From Klebsormidium nitens (Eukaryota > Plantae > Klebsormidiophyceae): a stretch of 64,000 bases of DNA. The DNA is taken from positions 62,001 through 126,000 of the forward strand of contig DF237048.1 of NCBI GenBank assembly GCA_000708835.1, written 5' to 3'. Below the pieces are notes generated by a model. That model did no database searches. It was not told the DNA's origin and was given only the letters and a program-made list of their open reading frames with translations. The first letter of the stretch is position 1. Each line of letters opens with the position of its first letter. The position numbers and the translations under genes are program-made. Below, piece by piece: positions 20,530 through 64,000 of this stretch.

Positions 20530-21384
20530 CCTCGTATGCAGACCTGATGCAGAACAGACGAGTGAACAGCTAAACACAAAGGTGCTTCTATGTTGTTCGT
20601 GGATTGACAGTTGGTGAGCGGTAGATGATCGCGCTTTTGAAAAGCTTCCACCGCCTTCCTGAGGGTCGGCGATTTTTGGCAAAACACAAGCGGCCTTGGC
20701 CTCTGTCTGGATTGAAGGTTTCTTTCAGAGCATCCGGTTGATACGGCACCCATGCGCCATGCAATTTCTCTCAGGGCCAACGCCACCACCAGCTCCAACT
20801 TCAAGTTCTTGGAAGTTGGAGCGATTTTGGAAGTTCTTTCATGCACGCTGGATCTCAGTGTTAACTTCATCCTTAAGTTTTAACCCTCTGGTCAGCGCAG
20901 CTGGAAACCTTTAACCCTCCTCAAACCCTGCCCAAGATCTGGAACCCTAAAAAGCTCGAGCAGCTCCATTGGCTATTACCGTAGTATAGCTGGAAGGTTC
21001 AAGTTTCTCTCACACATGATTTGAATCGTGGCAGTCAACCAGGAAAAGCTCATGGGATGATAAACAACAGGAGCGGCCCCTGATTGCCATTTCATTGAAG
21101 GGCTTCCTGCAGTTCATCTCCAGGCGGGGACCAGGCGATCACGATCTAGGAAACCAATCGCCAAGTCGCCAAGTTTGCGGACAACAGAAAAGGGCAAAGC
21201 TGTTTCTGCACGTCCCTAACCCCTTCCAAATCGCAGTGTCAGCATTGCTTCTTCAGTGAGGATCAGGGGTGTTCAATTTCAGGATAATCAGGTCAGAGAG
21301 TGCTGGCTTGTGTCTGGGGGCATGTCGTGATTCAATCGAGGGGTGCACCAGCATCTCATGATGCAAAAGTCGTTGATTGCAGCA

Positions 21385-22368
21385 ATGGCCACTTCTCAGG
21401 ACCCCGCAGTGCCCTTCCAATTCTGCCCCTGGGACGGGGTCCCTTATGTAGCGAACCTCCCCTTCTGCTCTCAATGCAAAGCGCCTCGACTGGCTGCTGA
21501 CCGGACGGAAAAGTACCGGCCCCCTTGGCAAAAGGTGCTCTACCTCAAGCAGCCCTACGAGGACAACTACACCGACGCGTCATTCCTCAGCTCGATGATC
21601 ACAAACGCCAACTTTGTGAAGAGGGACTACTGGACGGTGGTGCGCGACTCCACCGTCATCTCGCAGCAAATCTGCACGGTGGCCGTCGTGTCTGCAGTTT
21701 CCGCTTTAACTCTTTTGGGGGCCCTTTCTGCGACTGCTCTGCTGGCGGTAGATGCAGCCAGCCTGCTGCTGGGATACGTCGCTTTTCTCCTCAAGGACCC
21801 GCGCCACTGGCGGCGCGAGACCGTCACACGCAATGCCTTCAACTGCGCCCTTTTTGTCAGCGGGGTTTACATCCTCTCCCCCGTCCTGCAAACCTTGACC
21901 CGGTCCATAAGCTCTGACACCATATGGGCCCTTTCCATCGGCCTCTTACTACTGCACCTCTTCTTCCACGATTACTCCTACTCCAGCACGTACAGCACCA
22001 AGTTCTCTGGCAGCATCTCCATCAACGCCGCCATCTTCGCCTCGGTCCTAGTTTCCTCCCGCCTCCCCTCCCACATGCAAGTCTTTGCGCTTGTGCTCTT
22101 CTCCGTAGAGTTCTTCGTCCTCTTTCCAGTGCTGAGGCACCACGTCAAGAAGTACTCTCAGAAGCGCCACGTCACGCTGTCCCTGTCAATGGTCTCTCTT
22201 ACAACAGGGCTCCTGCTGCCGCTAAGCCCGCTCCTGACTGCCCTCTTCCTGGCGCTCATTCTGTCTGTCACCTTCATCTGCCCCTACTGGCTGATCAAGA
22301 TCGAGAAGTACAAGTATGAGATCCATGGGCCGTGGGACGAGGCCATGCCGGTTGTCAAGATGGACTGA
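21385..22368 (+). CDS. PIGC: GPI-GlcNAc transferase subunit C (PIG-C/GPI2/SETH1-like), intronless; the ORF is open from 21343
   Basis: WQKVLYLKQPYEDNYTD.SFL, multi-TM body, LTRSISSDTIWA, LSINA-like SISINAAIFASVLVSSRL, C-terminal KYKYEIHGPWDEA. Confidence 0.95.
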   Translation: MATSQDPAVPFQFCPWDGVPYVANLPFCSQCKAPRLAADRTEKYRPPWQKVLYLKQPYEDNYTDASFLSSMITNANFVKRDYWTVVRDSTVISQQICTVAVVSAVSALTLLGALSATALLAVDAASLLLGYVAFLLKDPRHWRRETVTRNAFNCALFVSGVYILSPVLQTLTRSISSDTIWALSIGLLLLHLFFHDYSYSSTYSTKFSGSISINAAIFASVLVSSRLPSHMQVFALVLFSVEFFVLFPVLRHHVKKYSQKRHVTLSLSMVSLTTGLLLPLSPLLTALFLALILSVTFICPYWLIKIEKYKYEIHGPWDEAMPVVKMD

Positions 22369-25575: not shown

Positions 25576-28500
25576 ATGGCGCGTCTGGAAAAGACAATCG
25601 TGCTGGCTCTGCTGTCAGCGGCTGCGCTTGTCGGTCTTGTGTCAGCTCAAAGTTGTGCGACTGCAGGTTTTTGCAGCGGGAGCTGCGCTGCAGGTTTCAA
25701 CCCTTGCTACAATGTAGATGGGTCGCAGCTGACTTGCTGCACCTCGACGTGAGTTATCCTGCTATTACCTACTTGTAGTGGAAGCAGTAACAAGCAGCCT
25801 ACTTAGCAGCTTGCAGTCACTGCTCCTGAAATCTTGTGTGTCGATCTGGATCATAAGTTCTTCAACCTGCTACAGAGTGTCTTACCAACCAAAACAAGAG
25901 GTTTTTTGGCGGAGATCAGAGTTGTTTAACATATGTTAAGAGTGAATACGCACATTGATGATGTTTTTCAGATGCGCAATAGTGATCGTTATTTAAAATA
26001 TAAGGATACCCGTGAAAACCCTGTTCAGATGGACCTGTCCTATTTTCCTCAACCTTTTTGTTGCTGGAATAAAAAGTGCGACGCTAAGAAAAGAACAATG
26101 CTGCAAAGAGCATCTATGACATTACCTCTGGGGCTTTTGAGGCAGCTTAACATCTTAGAGAAGTCCTTGAGCAGCCACTGATCTTTTCCACAGATTGACA
26201 ACCAGCACCAAGCGCAACTAATATGCTATGGTTGGAATACTTCACACATTAAGAGATCTGGAAGAATTAGCAAGTCACATGTGTGGCTACTCTGCATTTT
26301 GTGTCCAGTTAGGGCTAATCATGGTCAGTTGTGACAAGAAAGGGAGCTCTGCTTTATGTCAGATTTCACCAAGGATACAAGGAGTCAAAAAGTGGCTACT
26401 AGATCTAGAACCCTGACTCCTTGACTGTTCTGCACATCCTCCCAACTTCTCAAAATGCTGGTCGCAAACATCCAAAAAAAATTCATTGAGCAACTAACTC
26501 CAGAGGCTCCTGTTATTTGCAGCTGCCTCAACTGCGATCTGTCCACTGGTAATCCTCCCGGCACGACCCCTGCTCCCACCACAACCCCGGCCTCAACGGT
26601 CGCCCCCACTCCTGGCCCTACCACAACCCCAGCCCCAACTGCGAATGGCTGCCTGAGCGGCGGGCGGTGCACGGGCTCCTGTGCCACCGGTTTCAACCCT
26701 TGCTACAATGCTGACGGCTCGCAGCTGACCTGCTGTACCTCTGCGTAAGTCTTCTCCTTGATCTACATATATCTGTCGTTTGGGTGTAATCTTGGTTCCT
26801 GAGACTGCAGGACTACTTGTTCCTGAGCGTTGGCTGGTGCCTAGTTGCTCCAGGCTGTACATAGGATACAAGGATCTCCCGAACTCTTTCACTGGGGAGA
26901 ACCACCCTAATGGACCAGGGGGTGTGGCATCTCAGCGGACGAAGGCAGAGTGGATGCACTGGTCGGTTGACAGTCAATTATGTTTAGAATATACAACTCT
27001 ATGTAGTCAATCAACTGGATTAACGAGTACTGAAACTGCCATCATCTTTTCTTGACCGCCCCTTCAACTCTCCTTTTTTCGGCCTTTGTCCTAGTAGTCC
27101 TGATTTTTCCCACAAGTAAGTGATAATAAAGGTGAGTGACATCAGCTTCCTCGTTAACAAGGTCACAAGCCCCTACAAGTCAGATAGGCGCCTGACTCAT
27201 AGCATCGGTTACCAGTACAATATCAATGGAAGATCCCATCCTAGGACCAGCAACACTGTGGCCTTCTCCAGTTTCCCACCTCAGTCTCTACATTTCTCAC
27301 CAGGGGTGGCAACCTGCAAGTCTCCAAGAGCTTAGACTAGTCTTGAGCCTTTCAAACTGAGCTCCTGTCTATTTCCATATGCAGCTGCGACATTTGCAAC
27401 CTGGCCACTGGCGACGCCCCTGGCGTCTCCCAATCCCCTACCGCAACCACCACTGCCTCTCCTACCCCTACCCCCACAGCAACTGCCTCTGCCACCCCTA
27501 CTCCAACCCCTACCCCCACTAAGGTCTCTGCCCCGGCCCCTGCCCCCGGAGCAGATGGTTGCGTCGTGGGGGGGGTGTGCAGCGGCACTTGCTCTGCGCC
27601 CCTGAACCCTTGCTTCAACGCAGGTAAAGGTCACTCCCTTAGTGACGAGCTGCAGATCATGAGCTGCAATTGCCTTTGGCTTTGCCTCCTAATTGCTGCT
27701 TTCATCCCAAGTACTTGATCTTAAACGACAGTTCTGCTGTGGGGGAGCATGTAGCTTCTTGTGACCTGCCTTGGCCCCCTTACCCCTTGCTCTAATGAAG
27801 CCAAAAGTGCCCCATTTGGCAGCGATTGGGATCAGCATGTTTGAGAGAGCCTGAGGACGGTGTTGTTGTGAACTCTAGCTGGTTGAGGGGTGCCAAACAT
27901 GCAACAGTGTTGAATCTCATCTTAGGGAGTTGCCATTTCGAGAAGAGATTGTTAGGGTGCACTTTCTCTTGCAGTTTGTATGTTTCGAAACAACGAGTCC
28001 TGACAGCACTTGCAATGTCCACCTTTCCTTGAGGCCACCAAGATGCTTCCATGAGATGCTTGACGAAATCAAGCTTCAGTATCGTCACTTGTTTGTTACG
28101 AGGCATGGATTTCTCGAACTGTACAAGAGTCCCTGGAATAAAGTCGAACCGAGAGGGAGCGTCTCTGACAACTCCAGCTCGTCTGCAGCTGGGACCCAGC
28201 TGACTTGCTGTGTGAGCTCCTGCGACCAGTGCACTCTGGGGGCCGCTCCTGGAAACGACGTCACCTTCACGGTGCTTCACAACAATGATATCCATGGGCG
28301 TGTCCAGGCTTCGGTAAGTGCACAATTCTTGTAACGTTCGAAGCTTGTCGGTGTCTGTCCTGGCCAAATACAACCTTTTGGCTCCCTTGCAACACTGCTC
28401 TTTGCTTGGCGATTCTGTTGTATTCCACGTTGATCTAACAAAGCCAGTCAAGGAGACAGCAGCTGACAGCAGTCCATCATATTGGTTTGCATCAAGCGGG

Positions 28501-60300: not shown

Positions 60301-61764
60301 GATGCTATAGATGAGGCATCAAGAGTCATGATCGGTTGTCAGCTTATAACTACAGGCGCGGCAGCTGCTCAAGGTGAACAAGAGAGTCTCGGACAACGTG
60401 GCTCTGCTTGATCAGTGCGCCAGAAGCCTTTCCTTCAAGTTTGTCTGGCTTGCGACAACAGTCTGCTCGTGACAGAGAAATAGTACGCATACAGGCAGGT
60501 TGAGGCACAAACTCTGAGGCTGTTACAAGGCTCTTCCAGAGAAGGCAGTACTCTTGATAGTGGCGTAACAATTGATAACTCACTGCAGAACGCTGAAACA
60601 TTCTCATGGCCAGGCAGACAGATGCAGTGAAGTTGACGAGAAAGAAGCAAGCAAGGAGGGTGGATCGAGTGACCAGGTTTACTACTACTAGGCGTATTTG
60701 ACAAACATCAGCGCTTTTTGGTACGCAGCTCGTCTAAGTCTAGTAAGCTTCGATATCCTGTGCTTGATTGAGAATTTTACAAGCATCAAAAATTGGGGAT
60801 TTTAGAAAGGCCGATCAGGAAGATACCAAACACAACCGGACAATTGGCCTACCGGATCAGCAGCGAGAAGGTGAGCAGGAGCGAGGAAGGTCGGCAAGCG
60901 GCACTGGCAGCACCAGATTGTCATGACTTTGCAATCAGAGAATCTGCAGGCACCATGCTGAGAAACAGTGTGATGTGTTCAGACAAGTGGAACCAGCAAG
61001 GGTGGATTGCCTGATAACAGAAGACGGGATGATAATAGCATTTCAAACACAGTGGCTATAAGCCTGCCTGTAACTCTGAGGAGGGTTGTTTCTCTACTAT
61101 GCACAATGGATGATTTCGATCACACTCCCGGGCAGATGTCTTATAGGCAGTCCTAATTAGTCAGCCTGCAAATGCCACTTTCTGTTTTGAATGAACGAGG
61201 AGTAGTGTCTCAACTTTCACGACAGAGACAGAAGTTGCACCTAGCCATGCATCAGGGGCAGTGACACATTGATATGAAGACTTGGGTGTGGAGCAAGTAC
61301 AGCAGCTGATAATCTTTGAGAAGTGACTTGCATGAGATGCCTGAAGCAATTCATGCTGATCGAACCATGATTGTGGTCTAGCTCTTCCTATGAAGACAAG
61401 GAGGGATATGAATGCAATGCAATCCGCACAGGTTCCCGTTCAGCACCCTGAGTATCTGAGGCCTAGACTGCTATGAAATAATGACATCTCCTACAAGCTC
61501 TCTACAATCAAGTCATGTAAATGCATCTGGTGCAGGCAGCTTAAAGTTGATCAAGCAATAAAGGGTCAGAATTGCAGACGCAATCGGTCATATGATTTGG
61601 ATGCGTTCCAGACACTTTGGACAACAGACAGTAACAATCCACAACACTTCAAAGAGCCCAACCTTGCCTACCTGTCAGACCTGATTGTTTGGGCTACACT
61701 AGCAGCAGACAAGAAGCAGTTTTGTCCAAGAACAGAACCAGCTGATGAGTTTCTGAAGGAAGGT

Positions 61765-61780
61765 GGTGTTAGAAAACACC
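61765..61780 (-). other. Histone 3' stem-loop of H2B (GGTGTT-TTCT-AACACC)
   Basis: 6-bp stem and 4-nt loop 38 nt after the stop; inside a 29-nt block identical to that after H2A. Confidence 0.85.
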
Positions 61781-61818
61781 AGTTTGGTTGGTTTGGTGGC
61801 CCAGGACCGCCGTTCTGC

Positions 61819-62229
61819 TTAAGCAGAGGTGAACTTGGTCACAGCCTTGGTGCCCTCAGACACAGCATGCTTGGCGAGCTCGCCAGGCAGGATGAGGCGC
61901 ACAGCGGTCTGGATCTCGCGGGAGGTGATGGTCGGCTTCTTGTTGTAGCGCGCCAGCTTGGAGGCCTCGGTGGCCAGCTTCTCGAAGATGTCGTTGATGA
62001 AGGAGTTGAGGATGCTGATGGCCTTGCTGCTGATCCCAGTGTCGGGGTGGACCTGCTTGAGCACCTTGTAGATGTAAATCTTGAAGGTCTCCACTCCCTT
62101 CTTGGACTTCTTCTTGCCCTTGGCACCCTCCTTGGCCGGCTTCTTCTCAGCCTTGGCGGCAGGCTTCTTCTCAGCCTTAGGGGCCTTCTCGGCAGCGGGG
62201 GCCTTCTCAGCGGCAGGCTTGGGAGCCAT
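61819..62229 (-). CDS. H2B: Histone H2B, intronless (136 aa)
   Basis: MAPKPAAEK...[25 protein letters not shown]...[32 protein letters not shown]. Confidence 0.99.
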
Positions 62230-62470
62230 GGTTGCAGGAGCTGATTGCAAAGGAGACTGTTGAGGTTGTTGGTACGATGTTGATTGCAGTTGCTGAGAAT
62301 GGAGAGGATTGCTGTATTTATCTGTTCAACTCTGCTGCGCACTTCAAATTTTCGCTGAACTTCCGAAGATGTCTGTCTTGAGGCTTCAGTCAGTCCAGGA
62401 AGCAGTCTTGGCCGCAGTCTACGACTGAGCTCAAGAGCTATCTCATCAACTATTGGCTGAAAAGTAGGGC

Positions 62471-62651
62471 CACGGATCGATCTTGGCTTCCCCTCGATGT
62501 GTGCCGTTGGATAAGGTACACTTGTTATCGGACGCCGCTAGGCCGTTTTACCTTGGGTTCAAATTTGAATCTGCGGACTTGCCACGTGGCAGTGCTTCCC
62601 AGTGGTTCTGGTGAAGCCGTTCGATTATAGCCTTTTGCTTATCGGACGCCG
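62471..62651. promoter_or_regulatory. Bidirectional histone promoter motifs
   Basis: CACGGATC octamer variant (62471-62478), 13-nt direct repeat TTATCGGACGCCG (62525, 62639), TTCAAATTTGAA palindrome (62558-62569), TGCCACGTGGCA G-box palindrome (62580-62591); function inferred. Confidence 0.55.
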
Positions 62652-62921
62652 AAAATTCAACGACAAAAATCAGCTATCCATGCCCCTGTTTTTCAACGAA
62701 TTACCGTCCAGAAAGGCCCTCCAGACCGTGCGCCAAATTCCCAGCCTTGCAATCACGACTCACGGTCACCTCGACTACGGTAGAGAGAACTTGGAACAGT
62801 CCGAGAGAGCAGAAAGTCAGAGCGGTACAAAGCAACGCCCCTTGCGCCACTTCCCATGCAAAGTCTCTCGCAATCACACAGCAATCCAACTTCCAGTTCC
62901 CTTCGCCACCAATTCGCCACC

Positions 62922-63299
62922 ATGTCAGGACGCGGCAAGGCCTCCGGCAAGAAGTCTGTGAGCCGCAGCGCAAAGGCTGGGCTCCAGTTCCCCGTGGGGA
63001 GAATCGCCAGGTATCTCAAGGCTGGCAAGTATGCCACCCGTGTGGGTGCCGGCGCTCCTGTTTACCTCGCCGCCGTGCTTGAATACCTCGCGGCTGAGGT
63101 TCTGGAGCTGGCAGGCAACGCCTCCAGGGACAACAAGAAGACCAGGATCGTCCCCAGGCACATCCAGCTCGCGGTCAGGAACGACGAGGAGCTGAGCAAG
63201 CTGCTGGGCAACGTCACCATCGCCGCAGGAGGTGTCCTCCCCAACATCCACTCTGTGCTGCTCCCCAAGAAGAACGTCAAGGGTGGGGCTGCCGAGTAA
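62922..63299 (+). CDS. H2A: Histone H2A (canonical type), intronless (125 aa)
   Basis: MSGRGK...[20 protein letters not shown]...[38 protein letters not shown]; no SQE or SPKK tail. Confidence 0.99.
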
Positions 63300-63342
63300 A
63301 TGCGCACCAAGCGCAAGGCCTAGTGCCGAACACAACCAAACT

Positions 63343-63358
63343 GGTGTTTTCTAACACC
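63343..63358 (+). other. Histone 3' stem-loop of H2A (GGTGTT-TTCT-AACACC)
   Basis: 6-bp stem and 4-nt loop 43 nt after the stop, flanked by ACCAAACT and ACC. Confidence 0.85.
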
Positions 63359-64000
63359 ACCCCTGTTTCAGAGATTGATCAGCTTTGCGGTCTGGTGCGG
63401 ATTGTTTGTTGCTAGGATCCAGTCTACTTTGGACAGAACCTGTGCAGTGCTTACTTGTCTTGATATGAAGCCTCCAGGGATTCTACAAGCACAAACAAAG
63501 TACTGATTCTGTGAACAAGCACTTGATCCTCTCTGCTTGTCTTTCTGACAATCTACTTGAAACCAGATGTAGAGACCAGTCAGGATCTGTACGCAAGTAA
63601 GCTTCTGTAGTTTCACAGGTAGTCTATTAAAGCTCTAGTCAGCCAAGTCTCTGCAGAGGCGTCGGAGTACAAAAATACATACAGTGACGGATAGAGCGCT
63701 TGTTCCTGGGAGGTGTATATGGTGTTTGATATTTGACTCTGAAAACCAATGGGTACTTGAGATTCTGCAGCTTGCGGCTTCACAGAGCTCCATATGTGTT
63801 TGAATCTCAATCACTGTAAAACGTATCATGTTGTTTGAGCAGCAAGCACCAAGCCTGTTAGCATGTTATGTGTGTGAATCAGCTTGCATCCACTCCTGCA
63901 CAACTAACCACTTTTATCACCATGGCCTGGAGATGCAATCAATTGCAATAGACTGCAGTGCTCCATTGGTACATGCCATGCTGCATACTTACGGTAGTCT

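Follow-up and report, generated by a model that had tools for sequence, protein, structure and literature searches.

The histone H2A and H2B genes of the streptophyte alga Klebsormidium nitens are each followed by a short hairpin and a purine-rich block, which together probably form a histone pre-mRNA 3'-end processing signal, a divergent green-lineage version of the stem-loop and downstream element of replication-dependent genes. We observed the elements themselves, where they lie, that they are conserved and restricted to histone 3' ends, and in which organism they occur. The window (the whole 64-kb stretch of DNA analysed) was confirmed as coming from K. nitens by a PIG-C exon identical at 322/322 to GAQ82067.1, in keeping with the original prediction of a streptophyte source; a chlorophyte as the source is ruled out. 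The hairpin in K. nitens is already known. An October 2026 preprint (Zhao, Bond, Ni Leathlobhair; bioRxiv 10.64898/2026.10.14.759114) pre-empts the novelty proposed for it: the preprint lists stem-loops of this species 3' of H2A, H2B and H4, with none for H3, and remarks that their loops lack the canonical uridine. The features of the window are as follows.

61741..61756, minus strand: H2B purine-rich block TCAGAAACTCATCAGC, candidate histone downstream element (U7 pairing site), from the alignment of 11 flanks.
61762..61790, minus strand: H2B 3' element, with CAACCAAACU at 61790-61781, GGUGUU-UUCU-AACACC at 61780-61765 and ACC at 61764-61762.
61819..62229, minus strand: histone H2B CDS, 136 aa, intronless (ORF and Pfam PF00125, 4e-23).
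62230..62921, no strand: divergent promoter and 5' UTR region common to H2A and H2B, 692 bp between the start codons (from the sequence).
62922..63299, plus strand: histone H2A CDS, 125 aa, intronless (ORF and Pfam PF16211, PF00125).
63333..63361, plus strand: H2A 3' element, with CAACCAAACU at 63333-63342, GGUGUU-UUCU-AACACC at 63343-63358 and ACC at 63359-63361.
63368..63383, plus strand: H2A purine-rich block TCAGAGATTGATCAGC, candidate histone downstream element, from the alignment, cross-class identity and the purine peak.
63626..63631, plus strand: ATTAAA hexamer, possible poly(A) signal of read-through transcripts, 268 nt past the H2A stem.

The two genes are arranged head-to-head and divergently, and the predicted lack of introns was borne out, both ORFs being uninterrupted and matching the Pfam histone families over their full length. 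RNA-type sequencing runs contain merely 0.29-0.42 of the pair region, a share that fits an untranscribed spacer at 62230..62921. A related alga encodes the identical H2B protein at five loci. An exact-product look-up of the H2A of the window, as the 125-aa product or as the 147-aa form that starts at an upstream ATG, returned zero matching contigs, and an exact look-up of H2A and H2B in a protein collection gave no match.

The 29-mer CAACCAAACTGGTGTTTTCTAACACCACC, proposed to lie 3' of both genes, was indeed found in exactly two copies in the window, at the positions of the H2B and H2A 3' elements, while the chance expectation is none (100 shuffles of the window). Its stem begins at a distance of 38 nt from the TAA stop in H2B and 43 nt in H2A, in good agreement with the anticipated distance of about 40 nt. 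Both copies fold into the expected hairpin at -8.3 kcal/mol (z = -3.2 and -2.0), and an extra U-A pair in the fold extends the stem to 7 bp. A transposon or MITE origin was dismissed because the repeat is 16 nt long and found solely at histone 3' ends.

The element resembles the metazoan stem-loop (RF00032; SLBP, U7 snRNP, HDE) in its 6-bp stem, 4-nt loop, two basal G-C pairs, top U-A pair, ACC past the stem, purine-rich downstream block and distance of 38-43 nt from the stop, as well as in belonging to intronless, clustered core histone genes. It differs in the stem, GGUGUU instead of GGCUCU, and in the loop, UUCU, which has C at position 3 where the metazoan loop has a diagnostic U. The metazoan 5' flank is CCAAA, whereas that of K. 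nitens is CCAAACU, whose A-run stands 2 nt away from the stem and which makes the seventh U-A pair possible. Thus, of the geometry originally described, the 6-bp stem, the 4-nt loop and the ACC stand, and the CCAAA run is present yet displaced by 2 nt. The Rfam alignment places AAACU against the ccAAA of the model, and the ACU context recurs in unrelated histone hairpins. At gathering level, Rfam returned nothing across the window (no Histone3, no U7). In a permissive search the H2B copy aligned over the full length of the Histone3 model at 14.4 bits (E = 2.8) against a gathering score of 34, while the H2A copy was unlisted by RF00032 at E <= 10. With this score, the C at loop position 3 and the displaced A-run, the description of the element as "animal-style" proved too strong.

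The missed Rfam threshold and the missing loop U would be compatible with an SLBP-independent role of the hairpin, for instance by acting at the DNA level, by terminating transcription or by binding an unrelated histone-locus factor. We consider such a role improbable, because the stem, loop, GG/CC base, ACC, stop distance and purine block all match the SLBP/U7 signal, in many eukaryotes the same layout recurs 3' of genes from all four core histone classes, and SLBP is reported from green algae and land plants. In a metagenome scan for histone hairpins in which the search pattern fixed the stem and left the loop free, the same stem was found 23-87 nt past H2A, H2B, H3 and H4 ORFs on at least about 20 unrelated environmental contigs, alongside numerous matches due to chance. 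These hairpins share with K. nitens the GGUGUU stem (fixed by the pattern), the ACU/A context and the location after all four core classes; among the matches listed, ACC or ACA follows the stem, purines peak at +13 to +16 and no further Klebsormidium loci occur. Their loops vary (UUUC, UUUU, UUUA, AUUC, AUUU and others), and their RF00032 scores are higher, at 18.5-27.9 bits.

The 3' flanks of the two genes had been thought otherwise different; this did not hold, as a second block, TCAGARAYTSATCAGC, is common to both, 6-9 nt past the ACC (63368-63383 on the plus strand and 61741-61756 on the minus strand). Across 11 H2A and H2B 3' flanks from K. nitens and the related alga, the block is semi-conserved as YCA(A)GARAYTSATCWGC, with a cross-class identity of 0.45 against a background of 0.26, and its position coincides with the purine peak beyond the histone hairpins of unrelated taxa.

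The same alignment showed that the hairpin with its preceding AACU and following ACC is kept in all 11 flanks, with the exception of a single loop base. The hairpin lies 38-47 nt from the stop throughout, within the range of about 25-60 nt used to recognise such elements, the ACC is invariant (11/11), G-C pairs occupy positions 1 and 2 of the GG...CC stem base in 11/11 flanks (the pair at position 2 serves as a diagnostic in bioRxiv 10.64898/2026.10.14.759114), and the loop has U at position 1 and, in all 11 copies, C at position 3, one copy reading UCCU. Between H2A and H2B flanks, identity is 0.98 for the hairpin and 1.00 for the ACC, against a background of 0.26-0.30. Over the same comparison, 34-38% of the H2A codons with an identical residue differ synonymously, and identity in the proximal 3' UTR is just 55-58%. 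Histone 3' ends were the only places where the hairpin occurred in about 55 kb of the related alga, and the 20-kb flanks of its H2A genes contained no H3 or H4. The stem does not vary in any of the 11 flanks, and therefore provides no covariation to support pairing. Judging by this invariance against the 34-38% synonymous changes in H2A codons, the hairpin is under strong purifying selection.

These observations bear on whether the hairpin could lack any present function, being either a relic in decay or a side effect of gene conversion between histone copies. Gene conversion is frequent in histone families, and the preprint places K. nitens among "more divergent SL-like hairpins". However, conversion would homogenise entire flanks, while what is kept here amounts to 23 nt and the short downstream block, and the conservation spans the non-homologous H2A and H2B flanks, two species and 34-38% synonymous codon differences. 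A relic or conversion origin is therefore already disfavoured, and we regard it as very improbable.

For 63150-63600, a share of 0.86-1.00 of the words sampled is present in RNA-type runs from five studies, whose library type is not on record, and their coverage extends unbroken about 240 nt beyond the H2A hairpin; at this word share, RNA continues across the site at which H2A cleavage is expected. The RNA-type runs that contain H2A in full have almost nothing of its partner H2B, and no AAUAAA-like hexamer was found within 860 nt after the H2B copy. Public RNA-seq is mostly poly(A)-selected. The near-absence of H2B and the lack of a hexamer would be as expected of a tail-less mRNA in poly(A)-selected libraries. 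On the question of tail-less 3' ends, the H2A word share and the near-absence of H2B point in opposite directions.

The unbroken RNA across the H2A hairpin and the ATTAAA 268 nt beyond its stem could mean that the hairpin is not the 3' end at all. It would then be a conserved cis-element of the 3' UTR, through which a bound SLBP or other protein governs stability, translation or cell-cycle coupling, and the mRNAs would mainly be polyadenylated further downstream. Precedents exist in the mixed stem-loop and polyadenylation states that the preprint proposes for early-diverging fungi, alongside relaxed constraints in plants, and in moss histone genes, which yield tail-less as well as polyadenylated isoforms (Genome Biol March 2026, PMC13130582). 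On the other hand, poly(A)-selected RNA-seq would reveal just a minor read-through form, and these runs come with no record of their library type. In addition, AATAAA, ATTAAA and TGTAA are all absent within 500 nt from 6 of 9 flanks, every H2B flank included, the partner H2B is almost lacking in the same runs, and a conserved block at HDE distance would have no obvious role. This reading, of a regulatory 3' UTR site in mRNAs that are mostly polyadenylated downstream of it, seems rather unlikely to us.

We favour the processing signal, for which we infer protein binding, U7 pairing, a cleavage site and the absence of a tail. Transcription starting at the shared promoter would continue beyond the hairpin. 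An SLBP-type protein would bind the GGUGUU/AACACC hairpin together with its A/C-rich 5' flank and its ACC 3' flank, and a U7-like snRNP would base-pair with the purine-rich block 6-9 nt downstream. A CPSF73-type nuclease would then cleave a few nucleotides past the stem, leaving an mRNA that terminates in the hairpin and carries no poly(A) tail. Part of the transcripts, at least on the H2A side, would evade cleavage, extend downstream and possibly become polyadenylated. Such a dual output, in which a co-adapted SLBP and U7-like snRNP act on a non-canonical hairpin to give tail-less mRNAs while polyadenylated read-through is made too, is a tentative extension that we put forward with some reserve.

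The preprint and the present data concern the same species, the same H2A and H2B classes and the same missing loop U, and the window is one instance of the stem-loops reported there. In its genome-wide search for hairpins, the preprint puts K. nitens with divergent, relaxed ones, whereas the element described here stays unchanged among paralogues and in a sister species, is accompanied by a conserved downstream block and is crossed by RNA on the H2A side. In Physcomitrium, Adiantum and Cycas debaoensis, the second study (PMC13130582) describes poly(A)-less histone mRNAs and SLBP. These results agree with the proposal of a system that was kept in the streptophyte line and disappeared later, whereas it is outdated to regard the histone mRNAs of land plants as polyadenylated. 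The pathway works in Chlamydomonas, moss, fern and a cycad, and its presence there brackets the Klebsormidium lineage. That study sampled no streptophyte alga; many of its stem-loops pass RF00032, which the K. nitens hairpin does not, and its 3' ends were measured by nanopore, whereas the K. nitens element was recognised in genomic DNA. The dual isoforms of moss resemble the H2A read-through of K. nitens.

Whether plants ever had the animal-type pathway for tail-less histone mRNAs, and when they lost it, was an open question before 2026. The two 2026 papers give the outline of an answer, namely an ancestral pathway that survives into moss, fern and a cycad. To this the window contributes a clean, well-documented instance for K. 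nitens, and three details that go beyond both papers for this lineage, namely strong purifying selection rather than relaxation, a second conserved block where a U7 pairing site would lie, and read-through at H2A. These added details make Klebsormidium a reasonable test case for the coexistence of the stem-loop and poly(A) modes. If the dual output is true, it would contrast with the relaxed, decaying hairpins that the preprint describes in streptophyte algae, and Klebsormidium would be a living intermediate in the passage of plant-lineage histone mRNAs from stem-loop to poly(A).

The H2A and H2B genes of the window form a divergent pair with 692 bp in between, each an uninterrupted reading frame, in line with the original prediction that both lack introns. 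The features of the pair and of its 3′ flanks are:

61819-62229, minus strand: histone H2B coding sequence, 136 aa, intronless (ORF, full-length Pfam histone match)
62922-63299, plus strand: histone H2A coding sequence, 125 aa, intronless (ORF, full-length Pfam histone match)
61762-61790, minus strand: H2B 3′ element, 29-mer CAACCAAACTGGTGTTTTCTAACACCACC, exact match
63333-63361, plus strand: H2A 3′ element, 29-mer CAACCAAACTGGTGTTTTCTAACACCACC, exact match
61741-61756, minus strand: block TCAGARAYTSATCAGC downstream of the H2B hairpin, common to both flanks
63368-63383, plus strand: block TCAGARAYTSATCAGC downstream of the H2A hairpin, common to both flanks

The 29-mer consists of the 5′ flank CAACCAAACU, a GGUGUU stem, a UUCU loop, an AACACC stem and ACC, and it occurs exactly twice in the window, with zero occurrences expected from 100 dinucleotide-preserving shuffles. 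Both copies fold into the predicted hairpin with an additional U-A pair (-8.3 kcal/mol, z = -3.2 and -2.0). The stem-loop observation is confirmed: the common 29-mer with its 6-bp stem, 4-nt loop and ACC after both genes had been described accurately in sequence and fold, and the distance from the TAA stop to the stem start, put at about 40 nt, was measured as 38 nt (H2B) and 43 nt (H2A). The flanks had been called otherwise different, which does not hold for the block TCAGARAYTSATCAGC, beginning 6-9 nt past the ACC.

The source had been supposed to be a streptophyte, and this is confirmed by a PIG-C gene identical to a protein of Klebsormidium nitens, a member of the Streptophyta, class Klebsormidiophyceae:

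21343-22368, plus strand: PIG-C (GPI2) ORF, single exon, 322/322 identity to GAQ82067.1

After K. nitens, the nearest named PIG-C relatives were Chlorokybus (56%) and land plants (44-47%); chlorophytes were absent from the PIG-C homology matches. Of the 1146 aa of GAQ82067.1, PIG-C takes up just residues 1-322 (100% identity to the exon at 21385-22350, plus strand); elsewhere PIG-C measures 363 aa (a Logan-derived relative) or 327 aa (a related alga). This public model is probably PIG-C fused with a downstream gene, possibly the 5′-nucleotidase at 25576-28230.

An H2B protein identical to that of the window was found at five loci in JGI samples 3300060284 and 3300060285, giving the same sequence at 6/6 loci. 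The PIG-C of these samples is merely 86% identical to the window's, so they represent a related Klebsormidium-like alga, not K. nitens. Among the H2A copies, 117 residues are identical and the last 7-8 vary (window 63270-63299; related alga L001:550-580 and L004:568-598); the related alga's copies end in KKTGGGKAAE or KKTGGKTAE, and the window's ends differently.

The comparison covered 11 3′ flanks of H2A and H2B genes: the window's own two and nine at loci of the related alga. AACU-GGUGUU-UYCU-AACACC-ACC was present in all 11, 38-47 nt past the stop, and the invariant stem offered no covariation. Between the H2A genes of the window and the related alga, synonymous differences affected 34-38% of identical-residue codons, and the 3′ UTRs were 55-58% identical over their initial 31 nt. 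When the non-homologous H2A and H2B flanks were compared with the hairpin as anchor, identity reached 0.98 over the hairpin and 1.00 over ACC; it was 0.77 for the 12 nt preceding the stem, 0.45 from +10 to +26, and 0.26-0.30, the random level, elsewhere. A hairpin that varies at one loop base and an invariant ACC, set against synonymous codon change, a diverged UTR and random-level flanks, indicates at the sequence level a short RNA element under purifying selection. Across some 55 kb of related-alga sequence, this hairpin was found at histone 3′ ends and nowhere else. The layout of the element and its conservation make it improbable that the hairpin has a role without SLBP, and still more so that it is a relic. 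The identity pattern does not resemble whole-flank gene conversion. The sole change seen in the 23-nt element was a UCCU instead of UUCU loop in one related-alga H2A (L003:507-522, minus strand), which suggests that loop position 2 is its least constrained base.

The label "animal-style" proved too strong. Rfam gave no match in the window at the gathering level; in the permissive search the H2B copy aligned to the full Histone3 model (RF00032) with 14.4 bits versus a gathering score of 34 (E = 2.8), and the H2A copy was not among the permissive matches. The element is non-canonical, differing from the animal consensus by UGU/ACA in mid-stem, by a C in place of the diagnostic U at loop position 3, and by an A-run that sits 2 nt away from the stem.

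Metagenomes were scanned with the pattern ACTGGTGTTNNNNAACACCA, which yields many chance matches and, with its stem fixed, is uninformative on stem variation. At a minimum of about 20 loci, the match lies 23-87 nt past the end of a same-strand H2A, H2B, H3 or H4 ORF. GGUGUU/AACACC with ACU before and A after was seen in unrelated environmental eukaryotic contigs (range L006-L125; e.g., L021:467-486, L074:1118-1137 and L062:469-488). Among the matches listed, loops vary (UUUC, UUUU, UUUA, AUUC, AUUU, AAUU, UCCU and others), 5′ flanks are A/C-rich, the spacer is pyrimidine-rich, the post-stem trinucleotide is ACC in 17/22 and otherwise ACA, and a purine peak, often GAAA, lies at +13 to +16. These listed hairpins reach 18.5-27.9 bits on RF00032, all under its gathering score, so the metazoan-weighted model under-scores the entire GGUGUU stem class. 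Judged by their sequences, they look like a widespread non-metazoan stem-loop class missed by RF00032. The Klebsormidium block, CA(A)GARA, occupies the same position as the purine peak, which is that expected of a histone downstream element (HDE), the U7 pairing site in known systems.

RNA evidence was taken as the share of sampled sequence words present in transcriptome-sized runs (29-43 Mb of contigs). Over 61600-63500, runs from several studies contained 0.29-0.42 of the words, matching the H2A transcript alone (0.33 expected), so these runs hardly contain the window's H2B copy, which also has no AAUAAA-like hexamer within 860 nt. Over 63150-63600, the same runs (five studies) contained 0.86-1.00, contig-derived shares being blind to RNA ends and strand. 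About 0.44 was expected if the H2A mRNA stopped at the hairpin; RNA is thus continuous past the expected cleavage site, for at least 240 nt downstream, and an ATTAAA hexamer lies at 63626. This continuity is the main evidence for the leading rival explanation, rather unlikely in our view, that the hairpin is conserved as an internal part of the 3′ UTR in mostly polyadenylated mRNAs. Possibly, an overlapping transcript supplied the coverage downstream of H2A, and H2B words may have been lost technically. Both results fit poly(A)-selected libraries, which may have captured polyadenylated H2A read-through and missed tail-less H2B; this is one fitting reading, the library type not being on record.

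On balance, we favour a working processing signal made of stem-loop and downstream element as the probable explanation. On this view, the hairpin would be bound by an SLBP-type protein and the downstream block would base-pair with a U7-like snRNP; the RNA would be cut a few nt past the stem, with part of the transcripts reading through.

The K. nitens observation, put forward as new provided that the source was a streptophyte, is already in a preprint whose genome scan accepted any hairpin with a 6-bp stem and a 4-nt loop up to 300 nt from the stop and which read plant stem-loops as progressively relaxed (bioRxiv 10.64898/2026.10.14.759114). For K. nitens, it names stem-loops after H2A, H2B and H4, though not H3, and remarks on the absent loop uridine. 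Nanopore sequencing showed that most histone mRNAs lack a poly(A) tail in Chlamydomonas, Physcomitrium, Adiantum and Cycas debaoensis, all of which have SLBP; moss histone genes yield both isoforms, Selaginella and angiosperms have lost the pathway, and streptophyte algae were not among the species sampled (PMC13130582). Our literature search found no prior reports beyond these two. Of the original prediction, the streptophyte source stands, as does persistence in the streptophyte line with later loss, a sound inference already published (bioRxiv 10.64898/2026.10.14.759114; PMC13130582); the canonical animal form and the novelty do not. To the two papers, the analysis adds evidence that the Klebsormidium element is under strong selection, a conserved block at the distance of an HDE, and RNA that reads through the H2A hairpin.
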